In this document: in pieces, positions 2,437 through 39,916 of the stretch
Position numbering within the stretch: the stretch's first letter is position 1
Layout of the letters: each line of letters begins with the position of its first letter
Assembly (NCBI GenBank): GCA_024704765.1
Contig: JAKMXF010000032.1
Location: 1-64,000, forward strand
DNA length: 64,000 nucleotides
Direction of reading: 5' to 3'
DNA from: Oopsacas minuta
Lineage: Eukaryota > Animalia > Porifera
Position numbers and translations under genes: made by a program
The notes under the pieces: generated by a model
The model's input: only the letters and a program-made list of their open reading frames with translations
The model's database searches: none
Told to the model about the DNA's origin: nothing

Positions 2437-2884
2437 TATATAGCGTAACGTATTCTATGACCTCTTGAAGCGGAACTATACCCATACCACAACCAAATCT
2501 CTGCTAGACCCTATATAAATCAGGATTAGTAGTATAGAAATAAGATATATCTGGTCATGTGACAATGAAAAACTAGTTTTGAATACTTAAATAATCATAA
2601 TCGGTTAATCGATTCATCGGGATAATCGGGACAAAATATTGACTCCCGAGCTGTCCCGATTAAGCGGCTTCCACTATAATAATAAATGTTCATTTAATTT
2701 GTGGTCAGGATGATAATTTACATGCTGTAATTAGGCAAGGATCTACACCTCCGAGAATATAGTACGAATCACTGATTCTTGTAGACAAACACCTAAGCAA
2801 TCTACAGGACCAATAACCCCCCCCCTCCACCATCACCATATACTTAGCCACTCTTCCAAGAGAATTTCATTTCTCAATTTGAAT

Positions 2885-3540
2885 TTGGGGATCTTGGGAG
2901 TCTTTGAAGTAGTGGGAGATGAAAAGGTAACTTTTCCACGTTACGTATCTTCTTTTTCCCTCTCAGCGAAGATAGATAAATAGGCAGCGAAACATATTTT
3001 GTTATTGTCTACTTCTATTAAATCTTCTACAAATACTCTTTAGTGAATTTCTTTTTCTCAATATTAATGTTGGTCTCTTGTGAGTCTTTGGAGTAGTGGG
3101 AGTTGAAAGGTAACTTCCTAGATGGTGTTCCGTATCTTCCTTTGCCCTCTCAGCGAAGACTTTAATTCTTTCATAAGATTTTCCTTCCTATTTGCTTAGG
3201 TGTTTATGAATACGTAATGGATGAGCTTAAAATTCTCAACCCAAAGAATTGGTACAAATAGGAATAGATGAGCTCCATTCTCTGGGGAACTCATTCCCTC
3301 AAGTAATTGATGTTTGGGAAAGGAAGTGGAAAGAAAATCTTATAAAAGAATTTACTTCTAAGCTGAGAGGGAAAGCGAAGATACGTAATATCAAGGAAGT
3401 TAGCTTTTCATCTCCCACTACTCCAAAGACTCCCACGACACCGAAATTAAAATTGGGAAAAAGAAATTTAGAAAGAGTATATGTAGAAGATTTAATAGTA
3501 GTAGACAATAACAAAATATGTTTCGCTGGCTATTTATCCA
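2885..3540. repeat. Tandem plus inverted repeat block (about 210-bp arms 2975-3187 / 3329-3539)
   Basis: GAGTCTTTG(G/A)AGTAGTGGGAG...CCCTCTCAGCGAAGA occurs twice directly (about 2895 and 3080) and once inverted (about 3360-3435); GATAAATAG.CAGCGAAACATATTTTGTTATTGTCTAC at 2975 is inverted at about 3500-3539. Confidence 0.85.
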
Positions 3541-3918
3541 GCTCGTCAGTAACAAACACAACAATAGTACTAATTATAACTGATTGCTGCTATTCCAAGG
3601 TTTGAAGGAATTTCTAGATTTCTGAGTAACAAAGAGATGATAAAGTGTATATGAGCTTACTAATATTATTTATGGGAGTTACTATATAAAGTGGATTTGA
3701 ACAATGGTGGTTTCTGAAAGTGTTGATTGCTGACAGGCCATGTAATCATGTTGGTTTAGGGACGATCATTTGAATTTTCTGAACTAGTATATTCTAAATC
3801 TGTTGTAATTGTGGTATTGATTGTGACATCTGGAGCATTATTGGGTTCTTCGTTAGGTGGTTGACTAATAGTTTCGTAGAAAGGTTCTTGAATAGTAAAG
3901 ATTTGTTGTATACTACTA

Positions 3919-5264
3919 CAGGGTGTGACAAAAGTATTGTCGTTTTTTATAATGAATCCAACGTAAGCTAATATACAACAATTAGTACATTATTGCTTCT
4001 CAATATAGTCTCCTTGTCTTTCTAATACGGGTGCTACTCGCCTGGGCATACTGGAGACCATATTCTGCAAAACATTTCCTGAAATATCACTCCATGCCAT
4101 TTCCAAATTTTTGATGAGGTTATTCACAGTGCTTGCTTGCTCAAACTCTTCCACTTTGTCTTTCAGTATTGACCATAAGTTTTCAATGGGATTGAGGTCA
4201 GGTGAGTTCCCAGGCCATTCCGCTTTCTGCCAAAACGCTGGAAGATTCTATTTGCACCATTCTTGCGTTAGCTTGGCCGTATGAGCGGGAGCCCCGTCTT
4301 GCATGAAAATTATCTCGGACATCTTTGAAGTCATGGCCCGCTGTAAAACCGATCCATTTTTTGTTCTTCTATTGATCGCATCTTTGCAAGATCCAGTCAA
4401 AATCTTCGTACGATAGTACTCTCCATTAATAGTTTGCATCTGAGGTATAACATGCAGCTCAGATAGTGCTTGGTGAGATATCATGCCCCAAGCATGAACT
4501 TTCGCCGGAAATTTTATCTTTGTACAGGGTTCGATTGAACCTGAATCCTTGCTCCAAACTCGGTTATTCTGTCTGTTTGGGGTTGGAAATAATTCGAATG
4601 GAGATTTATCCGACCACAGAACTCTATTCCAATCTTCTACAGTCCAATCCTTGTGTTTCTGCGCAAATTCGATCCGGTTTTCCTTCATTTTCAAGGTCAA
4701 TCGAGGCCTTCTCGGCCTTTTAAATGGCGTAGTACCTAGAGACTTTCTCAAATATCGATGAACAGAGGTGTGAGTGACATCATAACCACTCCTCGTTAAT
4801 CTGAGAGCTAGCTTTCGTGTAGATTGCCTTCTCTTCCCCAAAGACAAAGCGATGACAATTTTCACAATTCTATCAATTTTCGGCGGAAGTCCATACTTAG
4901 ATTTGATTCCATTGAAAATCCCAATTTATCGCTAGGCCCCCCATCTCTGAACTGATCGAATATTGATATTCAACACTTAAGCAACCTTTTTAGGCGTTTC
5001 TCCTGCTTTAAGCATCCCCAATGCCTGAGATCTTAAAGATAATCCGTAATCCTGGACATTCATATCACAACAATAAAGTAGAAATTTCCAAAATGACGAA
5101 AATAATTCCAAAATATATCCTTGTAAGATTTGACTCCACTCGAGTTTAACTAAGTAGTATAAAAACATATTTACTGAGAGAAATCAATGGCAAGGGTTGT
5201 ATACGAATGTGAAATTTGAATTTAATGTGTATTAATATGACGACAATACTTTTGTTGCACCCTG
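3919..5264 (-). mobile_element. Tc1-like DD37E transposon with disrupted transposase (about 3990-5063)
   Basis: TIRs CAGGGTGTGACAAAAGTATTGTCGT / ACGACAATACTTTTGTTGCACCCTG with TA flanks; WSDKSPF, MQDGAPAH and WPGNSPDLNPIEN motifs with in-frame stops. Confidence 0.93.
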
Positions 5265-5290
5265 TACTACTACTATTATTATTATTATTA

Positions 5291-5378
<88 letters not shown>

Positions 5379-5387
5379 TATTATTAT
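5265..5387. repeat. (TAT)n/(TAC)n microsatellite
   Basis: Direct reading; abuts the Tc1 right end. Confidence 0.97.
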
Positions 5388-6867
5388 GTTATGAATATTA
5401 TGAATAAATGTTCACAATTTTTGCACTAAAGGAATGAATGAATAATTAGCCGAAAAATACCAAAAATAAATTGAAAGAGAGTAAAACAACCAAAGAGAGG
5501 GAAAACGAAATACAGTAGAATCCGCTTAAGCAATCCTAATCTATACTAAACTAAAATTTCGTCAGTCGATGGCAATATATTTGAATTATTACTTCATATA
5601 AATGTATAAAGCCAATTAAATGAATAATACAGAATAAACATATAATAATAACAAGGCAACATTAGATGATCATAATTTTAGATATACATCTTCACTCATA
5701 ATTTAACAAAATATGACGTAATATATGTTGTCAGGCCTCTGATTAGAAGTAAAGTTAAGAATTAGAATCACAAGAAAAGACAATTTCTAACGCACGATTA
5801 CTTACTCAAATCAAATAATGAATTTCCTATAGTTCTACAAAGATCATTGGATGTATTGCTCAAGAGGCATCGTCTGAATAAGTTTCAAATCAACTCCACC
5901 TTTTACAGGAGATATGAGACCTTACACGTACCCAAATATTATGATAACGTATACTTATAATTGCTAAAAATATGCTATGAGATATCTCTAACATTCACAA
6001 AGCGTGGCAAAATCTAAGTTCAATGAAAATATTACGTGAAAAGTTTCCTATCCAATTCTAGTTAACTTAACGAATATTAAGAGATGTTGCATACCTTTTC
6101 CGAGTAAGGAGTTTGGATAAATTTTGCATTTCCAAAGGCCCCATTACTTCTTACTGACAAACGCTAACAGTGAATCTAGTTTGGTAAACACCTACATCAA
6201 AGATACTGATATCAATGTACAGAGTTTACAATGATACTCGCTACATGATAAATGCAATTAGAAGGGCTCAGTAGTAGAGACTGGTTAGGTTATCACTTAT
6301 ATGTTGTAACTCCCAGAAGTAGTAACTTATGTAAATATGAAAGAAGTTGAGAGATAAAAATAATTACCAATTAAATAATTAAAGTACAAAAGATGGACTA
6401 GAATAATTATACTGTGGAGAGAGTGCTATTATAGTACTAGTTGAATTTATGTACTGAATTCCAGTAAATTCTAAGAATGTTATCTTCAATTTGAAACCAG
6501 CAGTTATTACAGCTAGATATGCCGATTATATTCAAATACGGTATAGAATTTAGTATTTTATGCGGGATTTTATCGTATTTATTCATCTATTCAAATATTA
6601 TTAGTGGTTACATGTGTTTGCTTACAGAAATGCATACATTAATTTGGTAGATTAGTAGGAGTATGTATTATAATGTATATGATGATAATGTATCCACCTG
6701 GGTCAATTAAACAGCTTACACGATCGTTGTTCATCGCTTATAATAGATGGATAAATATACAATAACTGATTCAGCAGATATAACTCTCGTTATAAAAGGA
6801 ATAGAAGCAATTACTCACATTATATAGTGGGTAAAAATCATTACGTTATAACCAGAGTTTCTTCATA

Positions 6868-7374
6868 CAAGTGAAACCTCTGGAATCGGGGCATGTGGGA
6901 TACTGGGAAAATTTCTGACGCCCCGATTGTGGATTTCAGTGTGGTATTGTGTCTAAATCACCATTACCCGTGTATATGTAGTTCATATTATGTCATACTA
7001 TTGTTTCGTATTGCTAGTCAAACTGTAACGTAAAATATTTCATTCTGCTACATATTGCTTATCATGAACACCTCTCTAAAGTGAAAATTTCACTTACGTA
7101 GCATTTATATTATGTTTTATTCGATAGTTATCGCGAAAATAAAAGTTTATTGAGTTGATTTCAGTATTGATGCCCCGATTGCGTAGGGGATATTAGTATT
7201 AGTCCTATGCAAGCTGAAAGAATTAGATTTTCAGGGTTTGTCCCGATTTCCCGATTGTCGCTAATTCCCCGATTCCAGAGGTTCATTTGTATGGGAAAAT
7301 ATTTTCGCGAAATTCAATGACCCGATTTCAGAGGTTCCCCGATTCCAGAGGCCCCGGTTAGAGAGGTTTCACTG
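6868..7374. mobile_element. pogo-type MITE
   Basis: TA|CAAGTGAAACCTCTGGAATCGGGG ... CCCCGGTTAGAGAGGTTTCACTG|TA, with CCCCGATT subterminal repeats; a second pogo-like right end follows at about 7405. Confidence 0.7.
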
Positions 7375-8067
7375 TATACTACTTGGTTATAACGGGAGTT
7401 TACTGTACACATGTGAGTATTGTTGTGGATAATTAGTATAATGTCTGTATTGCGAAGGAACTAGGATAGATAAATCTTTATACAAATTTCCATATACTAC
7501 TATAATGTGAATAATGTGGAATCATAATATTCCTTAATCAGAGCAATCACTTAATTAATGCAAAATAGAATAATAGAATGAATCAATTATTTTAATATCA
7601 AGATTCAGATGTTTGGAAAGAAATAACTGGGGACAGTGTAGCAAGCATTATACTACATTAATAAAAGTAGTCTTATTATAGAAGGAATTATTCTGAAAAA
7701 CTTGAGCCCTGCCATCCCATGGACATAAGCCTCATAAGAACCCAACATATGCCCTCGTTTGCCACTACAATTCTTCTACAAATAACCACAATTCGAAATA
7801 AAATTCTAAATATCAAACTGATCTCAATTGCATCAGGTGAGTTGGCTAATTAGCATAAGGATATAATCCTCAAACATTTTATTATGCTTACTTTGCGTAT
7901 TAACTAGAACATCTGCTGTTGTGGCGAAATTAGACGAATATATGCTACATTGGAAAATGGATTCGAGCTATGACAATTACAGCAGGCCATACATTGCAGA
8001 AAGTATTATACAATAGAACCTCTGAGATCTGTACAGTCTCGTCCATAAGGAAATTAGCTAAATTTCA

Positions 8068-10763: not shown

Positions 10764-10808
10764 CACAGTGGCACGAAATGGCTAAAACCTGGAAGTAGGT
10801 ATTAGGGT
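10764..10808 (+). repeat. RSS-like TIR of a RAG1/Transib-superfamily element
   Basis: CACAGTG, 10-bp spacer, GCTAAAACC (10781-10789), then GTATTAGGGT (10799-10808); lies about 300 bp beyond the stop of the minus-strand RAG1-like fragment. Confidence 0.65.
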
Positions 10809-11099
10809 ACTAGATAACGTATTAAACTATATTATTGACATATGGGGAATCGTACCCAAGGAATCGATTGACCTAACTAGATTTTTTCTAAGTCTTTGGG
10901 TGTGACAGTAATGATGTCATTGTCACATTCAAAAATATTTTGATCTTTTATCGATTTTAATTAAGCCAATTTGTGAACTATAGGTTCAGAAATTGAATGT
11001 TTATGTTTTAATATTATTAACACTATTTAGTGTACATTTTTATAAACTTATGAGACCACATTTCTTGTTGAAATGACCTACCGTTCATTGAACTACAAA

Positions 11100-11600
11100 C
11101 TATAACGTATTTATGATTAGAGAATTCACCAAAATATCTTGACAGCTCTTTAACTCAGATAGATCTGGCTCCGAATCGTTTTTGGTAATATTACGAAATG
11201 ATGCTAATATTGGATCACTTTGAGAGATAAGCCTGAAGAACACATCTTTAACGTTGTCCTCAAAGCTAAATTTTCTTGAGAGTCTCTCACGGTATCGCCT
11301 GACCAATTAATTGCAAGATTCAAGCCCTTCTTCAGACAAATCTTCTAAGCCTAACCCATCGTTATGATCCGAAATTATTTGTGGTGCATGGGCTAGAAGT
11401 TTATGTAAAGTAGGGGTTACATGTGCCCATGGAAAATTGTTAAAATGGATTCGTAAGTCTCTCGGCATACATTATCAAGGCCTTCAGTGTCCACTTTCCT
11501 GTTGCTATTATACAATCTCAGGATAGCACTCAAATTATTAAAGATTGTAGTGACAACTTGATGTGTCTCTTGAGGAACAACCGTCAATACCCAATAACCG
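11100..11600 (-). pseudogene. RAG1/Transib-like transposase, C-terminal fragment (copy 1)
   Basis: Manual translation: ...FNNLSAILRLYNSNRKVD...FPWAHVTPTLHKLLAHAPQIISDHNDGLGLEDLSEEGLESCN*LVRRYRERLSRKFSFEDNVKDVFFRLISQSDPIL, matching the HK..AH zinc ligands and catalytic E region. Confidence 0.85.
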
Positions 11601-12366
11601 AAACTTGGGAAATAATTAAGTGATCAACTCTCTCTAAGTTTTTGTTAGAAAGTTGAAATATGGTTCTATATACTTGCACTGAGAAATACAAGCTTAGAAC
11701 TGCTATTACATTAGAAATATAGGATGATTAGTATATATTGAATGCCCCTGTAGATTCTAGATATATTCAACGAGCGATATATAAAGTATCAGATGAAACA
11801 GTAAAGTATTTCTATTTTTGTTGTCAGTCAAATGTAGGACTTCATTGCTGTATTCTATGTTTATCCATACATTATATAAATGACAGAAGGTATCTCAGTA
11901 ATCTTTCGAATTTATGATGCATACTATTGTTCATATACATGCTTTCCCAGCAAAGTGAGTGCGCTGAATTTGAATGTATCAATGAATTTCTTCAGGAGCG
12001 AAAAGATTAATCAGAGATTACGGATACAATACTGGGAAAATTTGTAGAAATTTCTCTCGGCCATTAGCCATCCTGTTGGCAGCAAAATTTCTTTCCACTA
12101 GTTTTCCACCCTGAATTTTTAGTATATATCTTGCAAGTAATATAATCATTATATTAGAAGTACAAATGCCGCTTCATTGCGTAACATATTAAATTTTGTC
12201 AAATTCCATTCTCACATCTACGTACCTATGGTACAATGTAATGTAATTACATGATAATTTTACACCAATATTACGCAAAAATTATTCATATACACTGCAT
12301 ATTACGGGGTAGCATACAAGTTCATTAATTTGATAACCTATTGAAAATCTACTTATCAATTTACAG

Positions 12367-14567
12367 ATGGCTGAAGCAACAATTGTATCTGAAAGCCCGA
12401 AAACACGTCTTGACTTGGCTACCATATTGAAGGTTCACGGCTATGATATCAATCAAGCTGCAGATGAAGTGGTGCGTATACTAAATCTCGAAGAAGACAA
12501 GATACATTCTGCATACTCTCTGATGTCTAAAGTATTATTTAATTTCAGAAAGAGTAAGAAATCTATTGAGAGCTTAGATGGTGAGTGGTGGAGTGCAAGT
12601 ATTCCATGGATCCCTGTTAAACCCAAGAGCACTCAATCATTCATTTCTGTTTCAGGTTGTGAAGTAGAAAGCGGTGTTATATTGGTTCCAAATGTAGAGA
12701 GGAGAAAATCAATTGATAACATTCAAGTTCGTTCAAAGAAGATAAGGTTTGATCAGACTGGGATACTTACTTCCATCCGTCAGTTAGCACAACTTGAAAA
12801 TATTTCAGTTATTCGCTACGTTGCTCTCCTCTGTATATTGTAGCTGTAGAACAAATTGGTTTTAAAGGTATCGCAATATCGCTTGGAAAATCTATAAGGA
12901 AGAATCGATACTAACCCTTAGTAACATAGTTTCACCAGAAAAATCAACATTCTTAGCATACCAACTTAAGCTGGGGAAAGGAAAATGGCGAGATCTTAAA
13001 TATTATCTCCAATCAGAAGGCCTCGATTTGGCAACTTGGGAAAAATTAGTGAAATTAGAAAATCAATTGTTCCAAAATTCGACTGGTATCCAAATGTTTC
13101 CAATCTTATAGGAGTCTATATATCTTACTCATCACATGTAATTTCTCTCTTTGACCTGTTGTTAAAGGAATGTGTGCTAAATCTTCCTGTACCACACTTC
13201 TATCCATTAACACTCAAACTCAAGCATGGACTGGATGGTTCTGGATCTCATTCCTCTCCTGGGTTATTGTCAGCCCTGAATATAGACCGATCAAGTTATA
13301 TTGTCTTCATGGTTTCACCCATTCAAGTAATAGATCGTTTCGGGAATGTTCTGTGGGAAAATAGGCATCCTAACTCCTGTTTTTCCAACCAACCAGTAGC
13401 ACTTATTTGCCAAAAGGAGACTATTGACACTGATAGAATTGAGCAAGTTACTAAACCCTGAAATTGTTTCACTAAATGAGAATGGTTTTGATCAGCTAAA
13501 TGGCCATGTTAAAGTAGAGGTTAAAGCTTCAATGTTTGACGGAAAAATGTTAGCAACAATGACAGGTAAAGGAGGAGCGCCATGTATTGCCTGCAAAGCA
13601 ACCCGAAGTGATATCGATAGTATTACGAAAGTTGTTTGCGGGTTTCCTTTAGATTGTTCGATAGAGGATATAAAAGAGACAATCCGTCAGTTAACCTCTG
13701 ATGGAAAAGAGCTGATGAGCTACAATACAAAGCAACGGTGTGGGATTATACACGAACCTGCAAGTGGCATTGATGTATTTCCTGCAGCACCTTTACATTC
13801 TTACCTAAGTATTTTAGATTGGTTTTTTACCTCATCTACCGAATTGCAGCAGGAAAGTCCAAGTGGACTGAAGATTAAATGGTGCGAGATTATCGAGGTT
13901 TAGTATGCAAGCGTATCCATGAGCTTACGAACTTATTATTCGACCAACCAGGAGGAAGTGGGAACACAAGCACTGATAACATGGCAAGAACATTTTTTCA
14001 TATACAAACCCGTGTTTTATGATCGCTTTATCGTTTGTACCAAATGTTTATAGAGATGCTCTAACAGAGATTCACAGGAATTTATCTGCATTACTCAGAG
14101 TTGCTAGTAGTAATGAAGTTGTCGATGTAGACAGATTTCGTGTGTCAAGTCAAGAAACCTACATACTAATCTTGCAAACCTTTCCCTTGGTATCTATTAG
14201 CAATACACTACACAAATTCTTGCCTCATGTCCATCAGTTTATTGAGAGAAATGACAGCGTAGGATTGTGTAGTCTTTCTGAAGAAGGGTCAGAACAAAGA
14301 CTTAAGTTGATCCGAGAGTTCTCAGCATATTTGAGCAGGAAATCAGATTTTCTAAGTGGGTTAAGTGATGTTGCGATGAGGCTCTACATCTATGGTTGTC
14401 CAATTCTGAATGAAAAATTCAGAAAGACCATCATTTGTTCCACCTGTGGTCAAGTAGGTCATCAAAAGAATTGTGTAAACACCAGGCAAGGTGAAAACGT
14501 TACTAATAATATTGATAATGAAGATTCTCTCCTTCAAAATTCCATAAATGAACTCTTCTTGTATTAA
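12367..14567 (+). pseudogene. Near-complete RAG1-like (RAG1L/Transib superfamily) transposase with several stops and frameshifts (copy 2)
   Basis: NBD-like RRKSIDNIQVRSKKIR...; VSPEKSTFLAYQLKLGKGKWRDLK; KHGLDGSG (D at 13234); LWENRHPNSCFSNQPVALICQKE; MFDGKM (D at 13538); CIAC; PLHSY; TLHKFLPHVHQFIERNDSVGLCSLSEEGSEQ (E at 14292); C-terminal CSTCGQVGHQKNC (14436-14474). Motifs are colinear with RAG1 core as recalled. Confidence 0.9.
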
Positions 14568-14852
14568 CATTAAGTCATCAATAAGACACTCGTATGTTAG
14601 TTATTCTTCAGTTACCATAGCCATAATATATTCATATTCTATTTCTTTTAATAAAAACTAAGTTTAGTGTATATCTAGATTTCTGTGTTACTGTATATTG
14701 TACTTGAGATTATGTCATATATATTGAAAGCCTGATGTGATACAACAAATTGAAATCAACAAAAGAACCGCAATAGTCGACTTACTATACAGTAATAATG
14801 TATTTTATAAGCCTATCTCTAAAATTGAATGCGTAAAACCCTAATACTAGTA

Positions 14853-17193
14853 CAGTATGTCCTCTCTAATAGTCCACCTACTGGCAACGGTAGTTGAGGT
14901 GGACTATTACAGGTATTGGACTATTAGAGTTTAACATGTGTAAATACCGAAATTAATGTGCAGTATATACATATTTATACATCACATGAAGTGTCCAATT
15001 GTGGAACAAAATACTCCCTAAGGACAGTTTGCTTTGAGTTTAGGTCCTTTATCTCAGCTTTCAAGTCTAGGCATTTGGGATACACCCTTGTGAGCATATA
15101 AGTAGCTTCATCTTCATCTAATGATGACATTATTTGTATAACCTTCTCAACCATTTCAATGCCTTCAGTAATGTTCACACTATTGAGAGCTTCCATTCGA
15201 GTAAGAGGTTGTACTTCAGAATCTGAATCATCATCTGCACTTAATGGATCTGGCGGTATGTCCACGCTGCTAGGATCTATCTCCATTGAAGTTTCAGTTG
15301 CACCATCGTTTCCTGCAGTGGGTTGCACATCTTCTCGTTCAAGTGCCATTTGAACTTCATCTTGTTTAACAAGATCACCATCTTCGATATCAAACCAGTC
15401 ATTTAGTACATCAACGAGACCTGCAGGATCATTTTTAGCTTGCCATTGAAGAGCAACAAACTCTCCAATGAAATGCTCTCTCCCTATTGCAGGAGGAGGT
15501 TGATCATTGTCATCCTGGCTCGAGGGTTGACTGCTGATAGTTGCATACTGCAACAAACTGCTTAACTCTTCAACAGCTGGCAGACTCAATGGTCGACGAT
15601 AAGTCTCAAGACCCTCTACATGACATGTAGGCAGAATGTCTGCTTTCAACCAGCAATTTAGTAGAGTTGACTGGTTCATTGATTCCCACACCTCGTGCAC
15701 TATTGTTGCAGCATCTAAGAGGTTCGGTGGGTAAGCATGATTTAGCCCTCTAACTCCTGCTGTAATGGAGGCTCCAATTGCTCGCAATTCATCATACCTT
15801 TCAAGGTTTTTAACCATTGAATGTAGCATGTTGGACTTGTACTTCCTCTTAAGTGCAGCGATAATGCCCTGATCCATAGGTTGATGGACTGATGTACAGT
15901 TTGGTGGTAGCAAAACCCACTTGACCTGTGGGTCTTGAAGAGCAGCATCAGTTTCATCATGGGAACCAAAGTTGTCAGCTATCAGAATGACTGGTCTGGA
16001 TGTCCTCTTTCGAATTGCTGGCAGAAAGACATCATGGAACCACCATTTAGTCAGTACATGATCATTCCATGCATTCTTCTGCGAGTTGTATGGCAAAGGA
16101 GATGGACATGTTCGAAAGCAACGAGGCTGGGCTGCCTTCCCAATCATAGCAAGAGGAATCTTGTGTGTGCCTATTGCATTAGTGCACGTGATAAGGGTGA
16201 CACGATCCTTTGCTTTTTGAGCTTTAGTTCCCCGTGTACGTCGTCGCTGTTCATTTGGTGCAGTATACGTTGCACTAGGAATCAATCTAAAGTACAAGCC
16301 AGTTTCATCCCAGTTGTATATAAGCTCTGGGTCATACTCCTCTAGCATTTTTTTAATTTCCTGGATCCTCTCTTTAATATCTTCTGGGTTTACGTCGCCT
16401 GCTTCCCCATGCAGGCGAACACTCTTTCCTGTGCTGTTTCTTTTCATCAGCTTTTGCCACCAACCATTTGATGCTTTAAACTCATGTTCACCAAGGGATT
16501 TGGCCACTTGTTCAGCATACACCTTTATAATACTCAAAGAAATAGGCATAGGTTTGCGTCTGTTACGAAGAAGAGAAACAAATGCTACTACTTTTTCTTC
16601 TATAGCCCTATACTTGATCTCACGATTACGTCGAAGATCACCAGATGTCGTAAGAAGTTGTTGCTTGAGCTTCTTTGCACTCCACAAAACTCGGTTTATC
16701 GTCTTTACAGTGACATTATACTGTTTTGCAAGCATAGTCTGGTTAACTCGGACCAAGGTGGATTCTACAGAGTTGGGTTGAAAGCCACTTTTTAGTGCTT
16801 GATCAATCACATCACATTTCTGCTTCAGTGTAAGCTCAACCCTTTGCTTCTTTGCGGCAAGCTGAGCTGTGGTGCATTTCTTGCCTTTTCTTGTTGAAGC
16901 ACCTCTTAGGTGAATAGGTTGCTTTCGACCAGGAGCCATTGCTAAAAAACTGAGCTAGAAAACTGAGCTAGAACTAAAACAGGCTAGCAGTTGTCAGCAG
17001 TGCAGGTTATAACAAGCAGCTGCCAGATTCTAAATAGTGCCTGTTTTAACAAGCAGCTGCCAGCACTGCAGTGCACTCTGTACACTTATGTAACATTGTT
17101 TACACCTACAAATACAAATGGGTTTTGGGTATCTGCTAGACTATTAGAGGATTTGGACTATAAGGGAGGTGGACTATTAGAGAGGACATACTG
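14853..17193 (-). mobile_element. Full-length pogo/Tigger transposon
   Basis: Perfect 27-bp TIRs CAGTATGTCCTCTCTAATAGTCCACCT; TA on both sides. Confidence 0.97.
14975..16939 (-). CDS. pogo transposase (CENP-B-type HTH plus DDE_1), intact 654 aa, DD33D
   Basis: FKASNGWWQK; YNWDETGL; LIADNFGSH; QPMDQG; uninterrupted ORF. Confidence 0.95.
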   Translation of the reverse strand: MAPGRKQPIHLRGASTRKGKKCTTAQLAAKKQRVELTLKQKCDVIDQALKSGFQPNSVESTLVRVNQTMLAKQYNVTVKTINRVLWSAKKLKQQLLTTSGDLRRNREIKYRAIEEKVVAFVSLLRNRRKPMPISLSIIKVYAEQVAKSLGEHEFKASNGWWQKLMKRNSTGKSVRLHGEAGDVNPEDIKERIQEIKKMLEEYDPELIYNWDETGLYFRLIPSATYTAPNEQRRRTRGTKAQKAKDRVTLITCTNAIGTHKIPLAMIGKAAQPRCFRTCPSPLPYNSQKNAWNDHVLTKWWFHDVFLPAIRKRTSRPVILIADNFGSHDETDAALQDPQVKWVLLPPNCTSVHQPMDQGIIAALKRKYKSNMLHSMVKNLERYDELRAIGASITAGVRGLNHAYPPNLLDAATIVHEVWESMNQSTLLNCWLKADILPTCHVEGLETYRRPLSLPAVEELSSLLQYATISSQPSSQDDNDQPPPAIGREHFIGEFVALQWQAKNDPAGLVDVLNDWFDIEDGDLVKQDEVQMALEREDVQPTAGNDGATETSMEIDPSSVDIPPDPLSADDDSDSEVQPLTRMEALNSVNITEGIEMVEKVIQIMSSLDEDEATYMLTRVYPKCLDLKAEIKDLNSKQTVLREYFVPQLDTSCDV

Positions 17194-17195
17194 TA

Positions 17196-17218
17196 ATTCG
17201 CAATAATATCCCACTGTG
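17196..17218 (-). repeat. RSS-like terminus (CACAGTG) downstream of RAG1-like copy 2, split by the pogo insertion
   Basis: CACTGTG at 17212-17218. With the pogo removed, the minus strand reads CACAGTGGGATATTATTGCGAATTACTAGTATTAGGGT, sharing CACAGTGG and GTATTAGGGT with the 10764 end. Confidence 0.7.
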
Positions 17219-18229: not shown

Positions 18230-18830
18230 ACATTTCCTCACAAATATTCTAGTGACACATACTCAAGGATCGCTTTGGCTCAAGAGACGGACAAATATAA
18301 TATCTCTGTAATTTGTTGTGAATAAGAAATTCCTAGCAAGTTGTTTACGGTAACTTGGGATTAATTTATTGCATGCCTCCAATGCTTCTTCAGAAAAATT
18401 CTTCAACCCACAACCTCCATTACAATCTCGAATTGGTTCAGTTGGAGTGAGCTAGTAGACTATGGAGAGATGGAGTAACATTTTCTAAGAAAAGTTAGAG
18501 AATTTCGATTCGTAGGTACCCTTACCAAAGAATCCAGTCTCTATCTACTGCATGATTACTAATACGTATAATGTTTGTATTGAGAAAAACTTGTCTGCCA
18601 TATTTCAGTAGAAGTTGTTCCCCCATCACTGGATTGTTGGGGCCATTCTCAGCCCTGTTGTCTCGCATAAGAACCAGAAAACAGGGATGAGAATCGAACA
18701 AATTTCATTGAATCTTTTATACCTCTAGAGTTTGGCAACCATTCAAAAGTACCTGAAGCATGTGGTAGTTACGTAGCGTGATCTGAATATTTGCTGTTCA
18801 CAGGTGCGAAAGGTCCAGGAAACATTTGTT
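18230..18830 (-). pseudogene. RAG1/Transib-like transposase, C-terminal half fragment (copy 3)
   Basis: Manual translation: HASGTFEWLPNSRGIKDSMKFVR...SSDGGTTST...ENVTPSLHSLLAHS...GCGLKNFSEEALEACNKLIPSYRKQLARNFLFTTNYRDIIFVRLLSQSDP*. Confidence 0.82.
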
Positions 18831-18906
18831 CGTATTAGTATAGTCAACATACATTCAAATTCATGTGATGATATATTATTAAAAACGGAAGCCATATACC
18901 AATCTA

Positions 18907-20280
18907 CAGTGTGTTCGGAAATTATTGGGACTGATTATAAATGTATTCTACTATGAATTCATGACTCGTAGAGATTTCTCGTTTTAACACTAAGTTAAAA
19001 TACATATAGTTGAAGAAAAACTAGCATTATTATCACATTCTATCAATAATTATTTTTTTTCCCAGCATTGTCTAAACACAATCTAATTCTTTTGGGCATT
19101 GAAGTGCAAAAGGGACCGGAGAAAGTCTGGATCAAATGTTGCCCATATGTCCTGAATTGCCTGTTTTAGTTGGCTTACAGTTTTAGGATGAAGTACAATC
19201 AACCTCCTTTTCAAAACTGCCCACAGATTCTCAATGGGCGCTAGGTCTGGACTATTTGGCGGCCAATCAATTCTAAGGGGGACGAACTCCGTCTTCCACT
19301 CCTTAGCTGCTCTGCCAGTGTGCACAGGACTGTTATCCTCCTGTAAAACCCAGCTATCTCCGTATTTTGCGTTAGCCTCCTCAATAAGACACTCGCGAAG
19401 AGTGGAAATATACACCACCTGATTGAAATTTTCTGTGAAAATCCTCAGATGTGTAGTCCCCATTATCGAAATTCCACCCCAAAGATGAACTTTAGATGGA
19501 TGCCTGAAGGTTGGCAGATGAACCGTTTGTCCCTTTTTAATCCACATGTTGACTCTTCCAGAGTCAAGCCAAACTGAACATTCATCCGTAAAGAAGGTCT
19601 TACCTCCAATCAAAACACTTCATTTCTTTACACCAGGCGATTCTTTTGGAAATATGGAGGTCGGTGAGTACTGGAACTCGGACAGCCCGCTTGCTGACAA
19701 AGTTTTGCCTCTTTACCTGAGCATGAAGAGTACTTATGGATACAGGAGAGCTCAATCTCGGTAGTATAGAGCGTAGAGAGGTCCTCGGATTGCTTTGATA
19801 CAAAGCAGCTATCCTTCTTTTGTCATTTGCCTTGATTTTTGAAGGCCGACCAGCACCCCTTTTGTGCTGAAGGCTTTTTTTATCTTTTATCTGATTCAAG
19901 ACACGATATACAGTCTGCTTAGGTATACTTGTTCGCTGGCAGATATCCACTCCTTTGGTAATTCCTGCATTGTATAGTGTCTCTATTTGATTTCTGCGCT
20001 GTTGTTGGGTAGAGTGCTTGTACATTGTACAAAATATGCGGTCTTAGATGACGGAAATGGGGTCTCGAAATATATATAGGTATATTTGCTTGGGAATCAC
20101 AATATTTCAGCCAAACAAACGAAATATTATGTGAAATAGCGAATCTATTGGTTTTCTAACAATTATAGGAAGTGTATATATACAGTAAGGTAAATGGTTG
20201 TATAATATGTGCATAACCTGATATCCTTCATGGTGATTCAAGTTAATCATGAAAAGTTCCAATAATTTCCGAACATACTG
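18907..20280 (-). mobile_element. Tc1 DD34E transposon; transposase 19083-20025 frameshifted near 19600
   Basis: TIRs CAGTGTGTTCGGAAATTATTGG / CCAATAATTTCCGAACATACTG, TA flanks; FTDECS, QEDNSPVH, SPDLAPIEN. Confidence 0.94.
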
Positions 20281-20869
20281 TAGTAATATACATTTATACA
20301 ACTGTTTGAATACACTGTATTGCAGTGAGTTGATTGAATGCAATTACTTAGTTGGATATCATCCAAAAAACATTTTAAGAAATCACAATAACTATAACTG
20401 TAGTTTTGAAATTATAATCTATAATACAAAGGATTTATATTCTTTTATGTTATACAAAACAGGGTTTCTTGCAGGATAGTTTGCTGGGGGAACTATTGAT
20501 CACGCACTATAGAGAACACTTTCTGTATATTGTATCATGCGTACTGTTAGTGTTGTCATAACACCAAATATTAGGAATTATGGCTAGGGGCAATCCTAGG
20601 GCGCCCCCTCTGTTTAAACCCGATTAAATTGTTTTGTTAATTGAGACAAACTCTGGTAATAGAGTGAAAATTTGGAACTCAATCAATACGAAAATTCTCT
20701 TGAGTTAGGAAACTTTAATATACTAGGTACATGTATAAAATGTGGAGTAATATTTGTGAGTAAATTGGCAATATCAAATACTATATTGCAGTCATTGTTA
20801 TTAACATGACTAACGTAAGAAACAAAAAGAAGCGAAAGTTATATAAGTTGTGTATTCGATGGCATAACT

Positions 20870-37577: not shown

Positions 37578-39916
37578 CACAGTAGTGAGCATGGAAAATA
37601 TATATTAGCCAAAACCTTAAAAACCTGACAACATTATATGATTATTGACAAATGATTCCTGCAATTGTGCTTTATACTCCGAGTGTCAATGCCCTTGTAA
37701 TTCATCAAAAATCAGATACCCGTTGACAATAAGTCAATCTGAATTTTAACAAAGTCTAAAGTGAAGTTAATCTGTTTCTGATATATATAAACCATCCAGT
37801 GAAAGATAACACTTTCTACCTATTCTTAGTCGAGAAAAGTCTTTTGGTGCCAATGGCTTAGTGTATTATAAATTTTGATTCAATGCTTCGAAAATTTCGC
37901 GAAAGAAATTATGAAGAACGTATACAGTGCAAAGTCGATTATTAGAACCATTTGTTCATCCTAAAGGTTCTGTTCGGTTCAAACGAGTAGGGATGATTGA
38001 GTTTCAATCCAATACAAAATCTATATAGTATTTCTATGGCAGATTTTGGATAGCCATTGGGTGAGTTATGACGACCTGGGCAATATATATATTCATATTG
38101 TATTGACTTATCCATGTACGGTGTCTCCATCTAATGTGGAGTTGCAGATTCACAAGTAAGATATTCCTGGAAAATTTGATAGGAAGCACACAGGGGTTGT
38201 TCGCTTTCAGTAGGGAAAATTTACATAATAAATCTTGTCAATGTATATAGTGAGAATGATGAGAAATATGCAGGCGTCTCCAAATCTACTATTGCTTTTT
38301 ATCTAAATCAAATTACATGAGTGTTGTACTATCTCAAAGTCTCACCAAATTATGTTAATATCCGGCCTTTGTGAATCATATTTTTGTTCACCTAACATAA
38401 ATTCCTATGAATATAATTTCAACCTTCAAAATACTATCAAACTTATACTGGGTAGTTCTAATGTTACTTTTTACAACTCTAGCCCAATTTAAGTGAATTT
38501 TCATTAACTTTCTCTACTTAAACTTTGTGATGATACAGCAAAATTATAGGTTACATAATACGAATAATGCGAAAGTATTTTGGTGTGAACAAAGGTTTCT
38601 CACAATTTCCCACACTATTCAGGATATTATCCTCATGACAGACTATCTAATGATACTATTCTATAAATATTTGTTCAGCTAAACTAAAATAATGTCAGCA
38701 GTCCATTCTATACCTTTGATTACTATGGTATGTAAAGCTAAATGTTACTACGTTGATGCAATGTTTAACTCAACTATTATTCACAAGTTCAATTCCATTC
38801 TCGAAGCCAGTTGTTCGTCAATTTGTAGATTCAAGAAATTCATTAGAGTAGTGACACTTTCAATTAGCTCTTTTGAAGATAGCAATGCGATTGGCTGGTT
38901 AGGGAATCTAGAAATTGGGTATTGATTAGGTAGATAAAATTTCCTTGACAATCTTTCAATACAAGAGGAGCAACCATAAACAAAGGAAAATGTGAACGAT
39001 CACGAGCTGTTTGAGATCTAAGATTAGATACACTGTGACTTCCCGACCCATCTACATCATGCTTAACTATAAAGTTGAGCGGGTACATTAGGGGTTCTTC
39101 AATAGATTGTAAAGAGTGTGATGATACATCCCAAGAGATTTATGTGGTCAATGTAGTTGACTATTACTCCAATTGGATTTGAGACTGATGGGTATAATTG
39201 GAATGGAGTTTCAGTACTTGTAACATAGTCCTGACGTTTAAGAACTATTTCTTCAAGATTATATTCGACTGATCGTGGTGCATTGTTTATCTAACCCGAG
39301 TACACGTCAAATGGTGGTTCTTCTTATCTTATGAGAACGTTGATAATTGGGAGTCGATTTCAAGTTTTTCTCCAATTATTCTACTTGCCAAATTGACATC
39401 TACTTTAGCATTTCGATTGCCCTCTTTAGTATCCAGAAATAGTTCACTTACTTTATGAAGTGTAAGTTAAATTTTGCAGCTTTATATCACTAAAATTTAT
39501 GTGAAACAATTTGATATACACTAATTTAGGGTTAAATATATATATTTATCTTGTAGTTGACCTAAAATAACACATTCCCATACAACATATCCGAATCACA
39601 ATAATATGCTTCATACAAGATTGGGATACGATTCTTCAATAACTAATGCGTTGCCTAGTTACGATATTCGTTATTGAAATATGATATTAGTTTGAATATC
39701 CTATATATTCATGGATTATACAAAACGAAAAATATTGAATATTTTTGGAAATTAAACATGATGTCATAATTTCCAAATGCTAAGTCATTCACAAAATCTG
39801 ACATGCAAAAAGAATTGTCTTTAGTTAAAATCCCAGTAGCTAAAATTCAGCGGACAATAATAACCATTGTTGAAGGTATAGCCTACTGAAATATTCACAC
39901 AAAATAACCCACTGTG
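37578..39916 (-). mobile_element. Internally deleted RAG1/Transib-like transposon with both RSS-like ends
   Basis: Left end CACAGTA, 23-bp spacer, GCCAAAACC; right end CACTGTG (39910-39916) whose reverse complement CACAGTGGGTTATTTTGTGTGAAT resembles the 17218 end; flanks TGAGT / GAAGT (3 of 5 match). Confidence 0.65.
38690..39660 (-). pseudogene. RAG1-like transposase, N-terminal/core fragment (copy 4)
   Basis: ISITNIVTRQRI (NBD-like); QLYPSVSNPIGVIVNYIDHI; MYPLNFIVKHDVDGSGSHS...RSHFPLFMVAPL; NQPIALLSSKE. Colinear with copy 2. Confidence 0.82.

Follow-up and report, generated by a model that had tools for sequence, protein, structure and literature searches.

A decayed single-gene Transib transposon with RAG1L-like traits in the glass sponge Oopsacas minuta

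V(D)J recombination is traced back to Transib transposons, with RAGL transposons as the step on the way to RAG, and the features of RAG1 that serve for reading 12/23 signals and for binding RAG2 are thought to be older than the capture of RAG2. Here we analyse 64,000 nucleotides of the hexactinellid sponge Oopsacas minuta (positions 1 to 64,000 of contig JAKMXF010000032.1, assembly GCA_024704765.1), referred to as the window, in which positions 12367-14567 of the plus strand carry a broken gene related to RAG1. We consider it very probable that this gene is part of a copy, now decayed and no longer mobile, from a Transib family of O. minuta whose autonomous element measured 3.2 kb and had a single gene, and which is of the type designated Subgroup I.

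Transibs were divided into two subgroups by Tao et al. 2022 (Natl Sci Rev, PMC9435367). Those of Subgroup I, termed "intermediates" in the same study, possess asymmetric terminal inverted repeats (TIRs), an equivalent of the alpha11-12 region, the CTT1 tail common with RAG1L and an equivalent of the nonamer-binding domain (NBD); the alpha11-12 region was reported from bacterial Transibs too (PMC9435367). Tails and NBDs of this kind were, according to Martin et al. 2023, already known in Transibs. Transib is distinguished from RAG1L by identity below 22% and by absent N-terminal non-core elements (Martin et al. 2020, PMC7204232), and the same work raised, in general terms, a scenario of Transib arising from RAGL by loss. 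Target duplication of 5 bp is described as a hallmark of the Transib/RAG superfamily. Sponges are not mentioned in the RAGL and Transib surveys consulted here, those of Tao et al. and Martin et al. among them. In the O. minuta genome paper, Transib appears only as part of the RepeatMasker class "Other (Mirage, P-element, Transib)", which comprises 1,552 fragments and 1.22% of the genome.

The window copy and its family

Translation of the three forward frames between 12200 and 14900 reveals a broken reading frame, which starts with ATG at 12367 and ends with a stop codon at 14567. It contains KHGLDGSG, LWENRHPNS..QPVALICQKE, SMFDGKM, CIAC, PLHSY, LHKFLPH and SEEGSE, and its C-terminal tail, CSTCGQVGHQKNC, has the pattern C-x2-C-x3-G-H-x3-C. 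The DDE triad and the Cys2/His2 zinc ligands that characterize the Transib superfamily (Kapitonov & Jurka 2005) are both present in the window copy, and a further feature of that definition, a single gene between CAC-starting TIRs, is found in copies of its family. The region 12367-14567 (+) is confirmed as a pseudogene of a RAG1/Transib-superfamily transposase. A first-pass annotation of the window had described a RAG1-like relic at this place; every motif named in it was recovered by translation, and homology to HzTransib, BbeRAG1L and RAG1 was established. The parts of the element are given below in their order along the window.

11751..12366 (+): 5' non-coding leader, truncated; 73 bp are missing from the start of the element, and the 5' terminal repeat CACAGTGGGCTACTAGG with them
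12367..14567 (+): Transib transposase pseudogene, ancestrally about 745-750 aa, with seven frameshifts and two stops; in order, N-terminal and NBD-like region, DGSG (first Asp), FDGK (second Asp), CIAC, alpha11-12-like region, H-x4-H, SEEGSE (Glu), CCGHC-type tail
14568..14852 (+): Transib 3' non-coding tail up to the pogo insertion point, in which lies ATTAGGG, the conserved inner box of the 3' repeat
14853..17193 (-): pogo/Tigger-type transposon, foreign to the Transib and located in the spacer of its 3' terminal repeat
17196..17218 (+): outer part of the 3' terminal repeat of the Transib, 23 bp with CACTGTG (CACAGTG on the other strand) at the end

The gene had been described as four fragments of an open reading frame (ORF), but it falls into at least six frame pieces. 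Its decay can be followed by comparison with a majority consensus of four copies, namely the window copy and the copies L001, L002 and L004, which come from GCA_024704765.1 as well. Relative to this consensus, the window ORF carries seven frameshifting indels (near 12831, 12874, 13043, 13432, 13827, 14042 and 14563) and two in-frame stops. At the first six of these sites, contigs from sequencing runs show the un-shifted state in other copies. Three of the seven indels lie in homopolymers, and some of them may be errors of long-read assembly. The copy is a relic regardless, in view of its stops and its truncation, the insertion of pogo and the 6-10% by which copies diverge.

The 5' end of the element is missing. 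Similarity of L001 and L002 to the window begins at 11751, both copies extend 73 bp further to CACAGTG, and contigs of other copies carry on into 5' sequence of the family exactly at this position. The CACAGTG at 10764 was considered as the left end and rejected, as family similarity starts only at 11751; the 10764 end is part of another Transib family, which lies on the minus strand, and the 5-bp flanks are unlike (CAAAA against CTACT). At the other side, the first-pass annotation had placed the terminus about 270 bp past the stop codon, near 14840. This point is the left edge of the pogo insertion: other copies run uninterrupted across 14849-14852 and, as seen in the loose ends of contigs, read into ...ATTCGCAATAATAGCCCACTGTG. 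The real 3' terminus is CACTGTG at 17212-17218, where four copies stop exactly and beyond which their flanks diverge. The true 3' non-coding tail of the window Transib thus amounts to 308 bp. The inserted pogo/Tigger element is 2,341 bp long and has perfect 27-bp terminal repeats (CAGTATGTCCTCTCTAATAGTCCACCT), a TA duplication and, on the minus strand, an intact ORF of 654 aa with DDE_1 (E 5e-34), HTH_Tnp_Tc5 and CENP-B_N; it looks young and is possibly active. Since the Transib has lost its 5' end, has its 3' end split by pogo and carries seven frameshifts and two stops in its ORF, the window copy is inert: it neither moves nor makes protein.

Close matches of the window copy are named O. minuta proteins. 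L001, L002 and L004 show 89-94% DNA identity to it and have exact termini in common, and three further copies (L003, L005 and L006), taken from two ENA assemblies, are only about 70% identical. The element of the family measures 3.2 kb and consists of a 687-bp leader, one gene and a tail of about 310 bp. Every O. minuta copy examined is broken. The four-copy consensus reads 563 + 187 aa with one frameshift left, and it aligns to positions 68-518 (E 2.9e-83) and 526-688 (E 2.7e-56) of a profile built from 19 full-length relatives (583-794 aa, 699 positions), hereafter the clade profile. Because the consensus aligns end to end with this profile, the family must once have encoded a transposase of about 750 aa. 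Between 560 and 754 variant contigs per sequencing run fall on the window stretch; contig depth gives only a rough idea of copy number, which we put at dozens. Internal deletions that skip 427-787 bp (with joints within 12677-14261 of the window) occur in run contigs, and L005 holds a 1.27-kb derivative resembling a miniature inverted-repeat transposable element (MITE); both indicate that non-autonomous copies exist. Fragments of this pseudogene family are annotated as host proteins of O. minuta (P0002, P0143, P0210 and P0004, the last being KAI6659434.1, at L002 10001-10824). One annotated fragment bears the name "Out at first protein", apparently through mis-annotation or because the gene model is chimeric.

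Five copies (L001, L002, L004, L005 and L006) begin and finish with CACAGTGGG and contain one gene each; the window copy has the 3' end only. The 5' end of the family, CACAGTGGGCTACTAGG..ATTAGGCCC, is composed of the heptamer, 14 bp and ATTAGGCCC. The 3' end, read inward, is CACAGTGGGCTATTATTGCGAATTACTAGTATTAGGGTT, i.e. the heptamer, 23 bp and ATTAGGGTT. The ATTAGG box thus follows the left heptamer after 14 bp and the right one after 23 bp, which makes the ends asymmetric, and the 14/23 layout is kept in the roughly 70%-identical copies L003, L005 and L006. Separately, a solo 3' end at 2779-2993 of L002 is followed by CAGCTC, and the same hexamer stands 5' of the full copy in L002 (8146), 5 kb downstream.

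Transib kinship and RAG1L-like traits

The last piece of the window gene (14019-14567), when compared with sequences in PDB, matched HzTransib best (E 2e-10, 44 bits), followed by BbeRAG1L (E 2.6e-7, 34 bits) and RAG1 (E about 4e-4, 24 bits); its Pfam RAG1 match is just below the cut-off. The middle and N-terminal pieces alone gave nothing significant in PDB searches. Among 1.84 billion representative proteins, the last piece has 509 relatives at E<=1e-3. The closest full-length protein is about 32-37% identical to the family over long pieces, higher values being confined to short stretches. Five window pieces are colinear on positions 125-689 of the clade profile. Searched against the sequences of solved structures, this profile gave the following results.

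HzTransib: 243 bits; two profile stretches, starting at 147; positions 386-439 spanned by 13 residues
BbeRAG1L: 203 bits; one profile stretch, 81-656
RAG1: 148 bits; one profile stretch from 60, the site of its GGRPR motif

By these scores, the nearest sequence to the clade is that of a bona fide Transib. The catalytic motifs, DG[SA]G and DGK, are HzTransib-like, in contrast to DGMG and DEK of RAG1 and RAG1L. As far as alignments can be read, the position of RAG1 R848 is occupied by Thr in the sponge copy and HzTransib, and by the hydrophobic Met in RAG1L. For the closest intact relative, an AlphaFold2 (AF2) model (pLDDT 78, pTM 0.72) was compared by Foldseek with structures of RAG1 core, BbRAGL and HzTransib and reached TM-scores of 0.7-0.83; identity in the structural alignments was 21-22% with HzTransib and 16-18% with RAG1 and BbRAGL. 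In an unrooted maximum-likelihood tree of full-length relatives, the sponge family forms a long branch inside a tail-bearing clade. Its sister is a protein of large ENA contigs (SH-aLRT 93), and the two are joined, with weaker support (81), by a krill-type group.

Three traits recall RAG1L. Clade-profile positions 386-439, corresponding to alpha11-12, align to both BbeRAG1L and RAG1, whereas HzTransib spans them with 13 residues. The window piece 13400-13900 fills these positions, a direct alignment of L002 with HzTransib shows an excess of about 45 aa in L002, and in the AF2 model of the relative the segment is helical with good confidence. Further, the C-x2-C-x3-[G]H-x3/4-C tail is found in 63 of the 150 nearest relatives. 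As for the NBD-like region, the clade profile aligns to the NBD of RAG1 (from GRPR) and to NBD* of BbeRAG1L, and the family consensus aligns to the profile from position 68, hence into its NBD-like part. We suggest that the combination of these traits (NBD-like region, alpha11-12 segment and CCGHC tail) with catalytic motifs of the Transib type is real. The NBD-like region and the tail beside such catalytic motifs were proposed in the first-pass annotation for a single-gene element and are borne out here, the NBD-like part at the level of profiles only; the alpha11-12 segment is added by the present analysis. Likewise, the absence of RAG2 downstream holds, full-length copies being 3.2 kb long with one gene.

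By the distinction of Martin et al. 2020, the family is Transib because identity stays below 22% and N-terminal non-core elements are lacking. In the N-terminal 158 aa there are two Cys and two His, no Pfam match and no RING or zinc-finger non-core elements; neither these elements nor identity above about 22%, by which the same authors recognize RAG1L, is thus found. A RAG1L transposon would also carry a convergent RAG2L (kelch, usually with PHD) inside the same terminal repeats. None is present: copies from three assemblies contain no RAG2-like gene and no second ORF, the whole genome not having been scanned for a RAG2-like gene. Of the Subgroup I traits, the asymmetric terminal repeats, the alpha11-12 region and the type I CCGHC tail are present, and the sponge family appears to fit Subgroup I of Tao et al. 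by its features and profile scores, not by phylogeny.

Several observations do not sit easily with this assignment. Our tree contained no RAG1, RAG1L, HzTransib or Subgroup I/II references, and the subgroup rests on diagnostic features together with profile scores. The NBD-like homology, seen at profile level only, is the weakest point: a PDB search with the sponge N-terminal piece by itself yields no NBD, the N-terminal piece of the window itself aligns with an independent E-value of 0.26, and GRPR (AT-hook) is not kept, ERRK being there instead. The Arg of the xRP motif is replaced by Gln (NQP in ..SNQPVAL.., 13382-13390) in the window and in L001, the only copies read there. Finally, target duplications are apparently 6 bp long. 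Paired flanks match over 6 bp in L005 (CGGCAG, 5466-6737), L006 (CGACTA, 2683-7027) and L004 (GAGCTG/GAACTG, 5309-7436), and a 5-bp register gives no match, in a small sample to which the window copy, devoid of its 5' end, does not contribute. The apparent 6-bp duplication is a lead from few cases. Concerning the xRP motif, its Arg is invariant in the 19 aligned relatives and is present in HzTransib and BbeRAG1L; the corresponding residue of mouse RAG1 is presumably Lys.

The first-pass annotation saw in this element a possible RAG1L-only lineage, placed midway from Transib to RAG transposons with two genes. In substance this stands, as the trait set is real; as a new lineage it does not. A previously unrecognised lineage nearer to RAG1L than any described Transib would account for the three traits that recall RAG1L, as well as for the alignment of about 640 columns, NBD included, between the AF2 model of the nearest intact relative and RAG1 core. 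It would also be in line with sponges being unmentioned in the surveys consulted and with an identity of only about 32-37% to the closest full-length protein among 1.8 billion representatives. However, the identical trait set defines the published Subgroup I (Tao et al. 2022, restated by Martin et al. 2023), so that the intermediate lineage amounts to a rediscovery of a published category. Both profile and pairwise scores put HzTransib above RAG1L, the catalytic motifs are of the Transib type, Thr at the R848 position is as in HzTransib, and in the unrooted tree the family nests among other tail-bearing, Transib-like proteins. We therefore find such a lineage improbable. The comparison by profile and structure, which the annotation had itself suggested, supports the RAG1L-like extras and puts HzTransib nearer than RAG1L (HzTransib 243 bits, BbeRAG1L 203, RAG1 148). 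The 150 nearest relatives form a large family in which 63 already have the tail, and the profile of 19 of its full-length members favours HzTransib; by motifs and scores, this is largely the situation that the annotation itself had named as refuting a separate lineage.

There is very little chance, in our opinion, that the gene goes back to a RAGL transposon with two genes, as the RAG1L left behind when RAG2L was lost. The general scenario was raised by Martin et al. 2020, and the retained alpha11-12 segment binds RAG2 in RAG1; the same segment nevertheless exists in bacterial Transibs (Tao et al. 2022) and need not imply a RAG2 partner. Moreover, there is no room for a second gene and no trace of it in copies from three assemblies, RING and zinc-finger non-core elements are missing (two Cys and two His in the first ~100 aa), and identity to RAG1 and RAG1L is under the line of about 22% drawn by Martin et al. 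2020. Domestication of the transposase as a host gene has nothing in its favour except that some fragments (P0001, P0002 and P0004) have been given gene models. Multiple copies, terminal repeats and target duplications speak against it, all examined copies are full of frameshifts and stops, and the window copy is truncated and interrupted; at the window locus the disrupted frame already refutes it, and we practically dismiss it. The Subgroup I type Transib remains our explanation of the locus, and what appears to be new about it is the host phylum, together with the apparent 6-bp target duplication.

Neighbouring transposable elements

The window contains remains of other Transibs besides the one described. 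Directly upstream, 10764-11750 (-) is the 3' part of a second, divergent Transib family with the terminus CACAGTGGCACGAAATGGCTAAAACC. It includes a C-terminal fragment at 11103-11623 (-) that is 38% identical to the 12367-14567 protein and is without the CCHC tail. The stretch 11593-11752 recurs in inverted orientation at 8122-8280 of L001, with 92% identity.

Downstream of the pogo insertion, 18266-18451 (-) is a fourth Transib-like fragment, which covers the region of the catalytic Glu (profile positions 596-647, E 1.5e-13) and has 73% DNA identity to L001 13093-13210, beside the L001 copy. It is followed by 1.38 kb at 18905-20282 (-) that are 99.3% identical to L001 21146-22521, where a Tc1/mariner transposase gene (DDE_3, HTH_Tnp_Tc3_2) has been called; this transposon family is very recent. 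An internally deleted Transib of a third family occupies 37578-39916. It is bounded by CACAGTA..+23..GCCAAAACC at the left end and by CACTGTG at the right end, a fragment of the DGSG region lies at 38867-39203 (-), and its flanks are unmatched over both 5 and 6 bp.

Putative mechanism, significance and comparison with known systems

By analogy with HzTransib, BbeRAG1L and RAG1, a possible mode of action can be outlined for the ancestral transposase. The enzyme of about 750 aa had the full layout of RAG1 core: an NBD-like helical region, a DDE centre of RNase-H fold (GLDGSG, MFDGK, SEEGSE), a C-x2-C / H-x4-H zinc domain with alpha11-12, and a CCGHC zinc-knuckle tail. Its dimer would nick DNA at the border of the CACAGTG heptamer and the flank. 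Flank hairpins would be formed and the excised element would then be integrated. The ATTAGG inner box would be a likely docking site of the tail, the NBD-like region or both, similarly to the TR2 box for the BbeRAG1L tail, and if so, pairing of a short end with a long one would follow. No second gene would be needed.

If our interpretation is correct, then the sponge family is a further enzyme without RAG2 that possesses the RAG1 features mentioned at the outset along with asymmetric ends, this time in an early-branching animal. It backs the published model and does not change it. Should an intact or consensus enzyme enforce short/long pairing without RAG2, a 12/23-type rule and the target stagger would be properties of a RAG1-like subunit from before RAG2. 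A doubtful but wider suggestion is that hexactinellids harbour deep-branching and so far unsampled Transibs of the Subgroup I type, with full RAG1-core layout, 14/23 ends with an inner box that is not A-rich, and 6-bp duplication. In practical terms, the family offers extra sampling for phylogeny and possibly a test system for RAG2-independent end pairing and the 6-bp stagger. The window copy itself matters for annotation only, fragments of the family having been called host genes in the O. minuta proteome.

Among known systems, Subgroup I Transibs (MleTransib, PbaTransib and HvuTransib-9) share with the sponge family the single gene, asymmetric CAC-starting repeats, alpha11-12, the type I CCGHC tail, the lack of RAG2L and, at profile level, the NBD equivalent. 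The sponge family differs from them in its hexactinellid host, in a tail with GH-x3-C instead of GH-x4-C, in the GRP motif, which is not kept, and in duplications that look 6 bp long. HzTransib of Helicoverpa zea (PDB 6pqn and related structures), a member of Subgroup II, is the best-scoring relative with a solved structure. Both have DG.G, DGK and SEE..E, the CxxC/HxxxxH ligands, terminal heptamers of the same type and a single-gene cut-and-paste organization, whereas HzTransib has no NBD-like region at its N terminus, no alpha11-12 segment (13 of its residues stand for 54 positions of the profile) and no CCGHC tail.

BbeRAG1L of the amphioxus ProtoRAG (PDB 6b40), like other RAG1L of RAGL-B and RAGL-A, is colinear with the clade over about 575 profile positions, including an NBD*-type region without GRPR, and has alpha11-12 and the CCGHC tail, which in BbeRAG1L clamps the inner box of the terminal repeat. 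Unlike it, the sponge family has no convergent RAG2L and no N-terminal RING or zinc finger; it carries DGK, not DEK, and DGSG, not DGMG, and BbeRAG1L scores below HzTransib, with structural identity of about 18%. With RAG1 core and its 12/23 signals, finally, the family has in common the fold, for which the clade model reaches a TM-score of 0.7-0.78, as well as catalytic and zinc ligands, the CACAGTG heptamer and the short and long spacers, which are 14 and 23 bp in the sponge. It differs from RAG1 in being a mobile element without RAG2, in having an ATTAGG inner box in place of an A-rich nonamer, and in ending with a zinc-knuckle tail instead of an acidic one.

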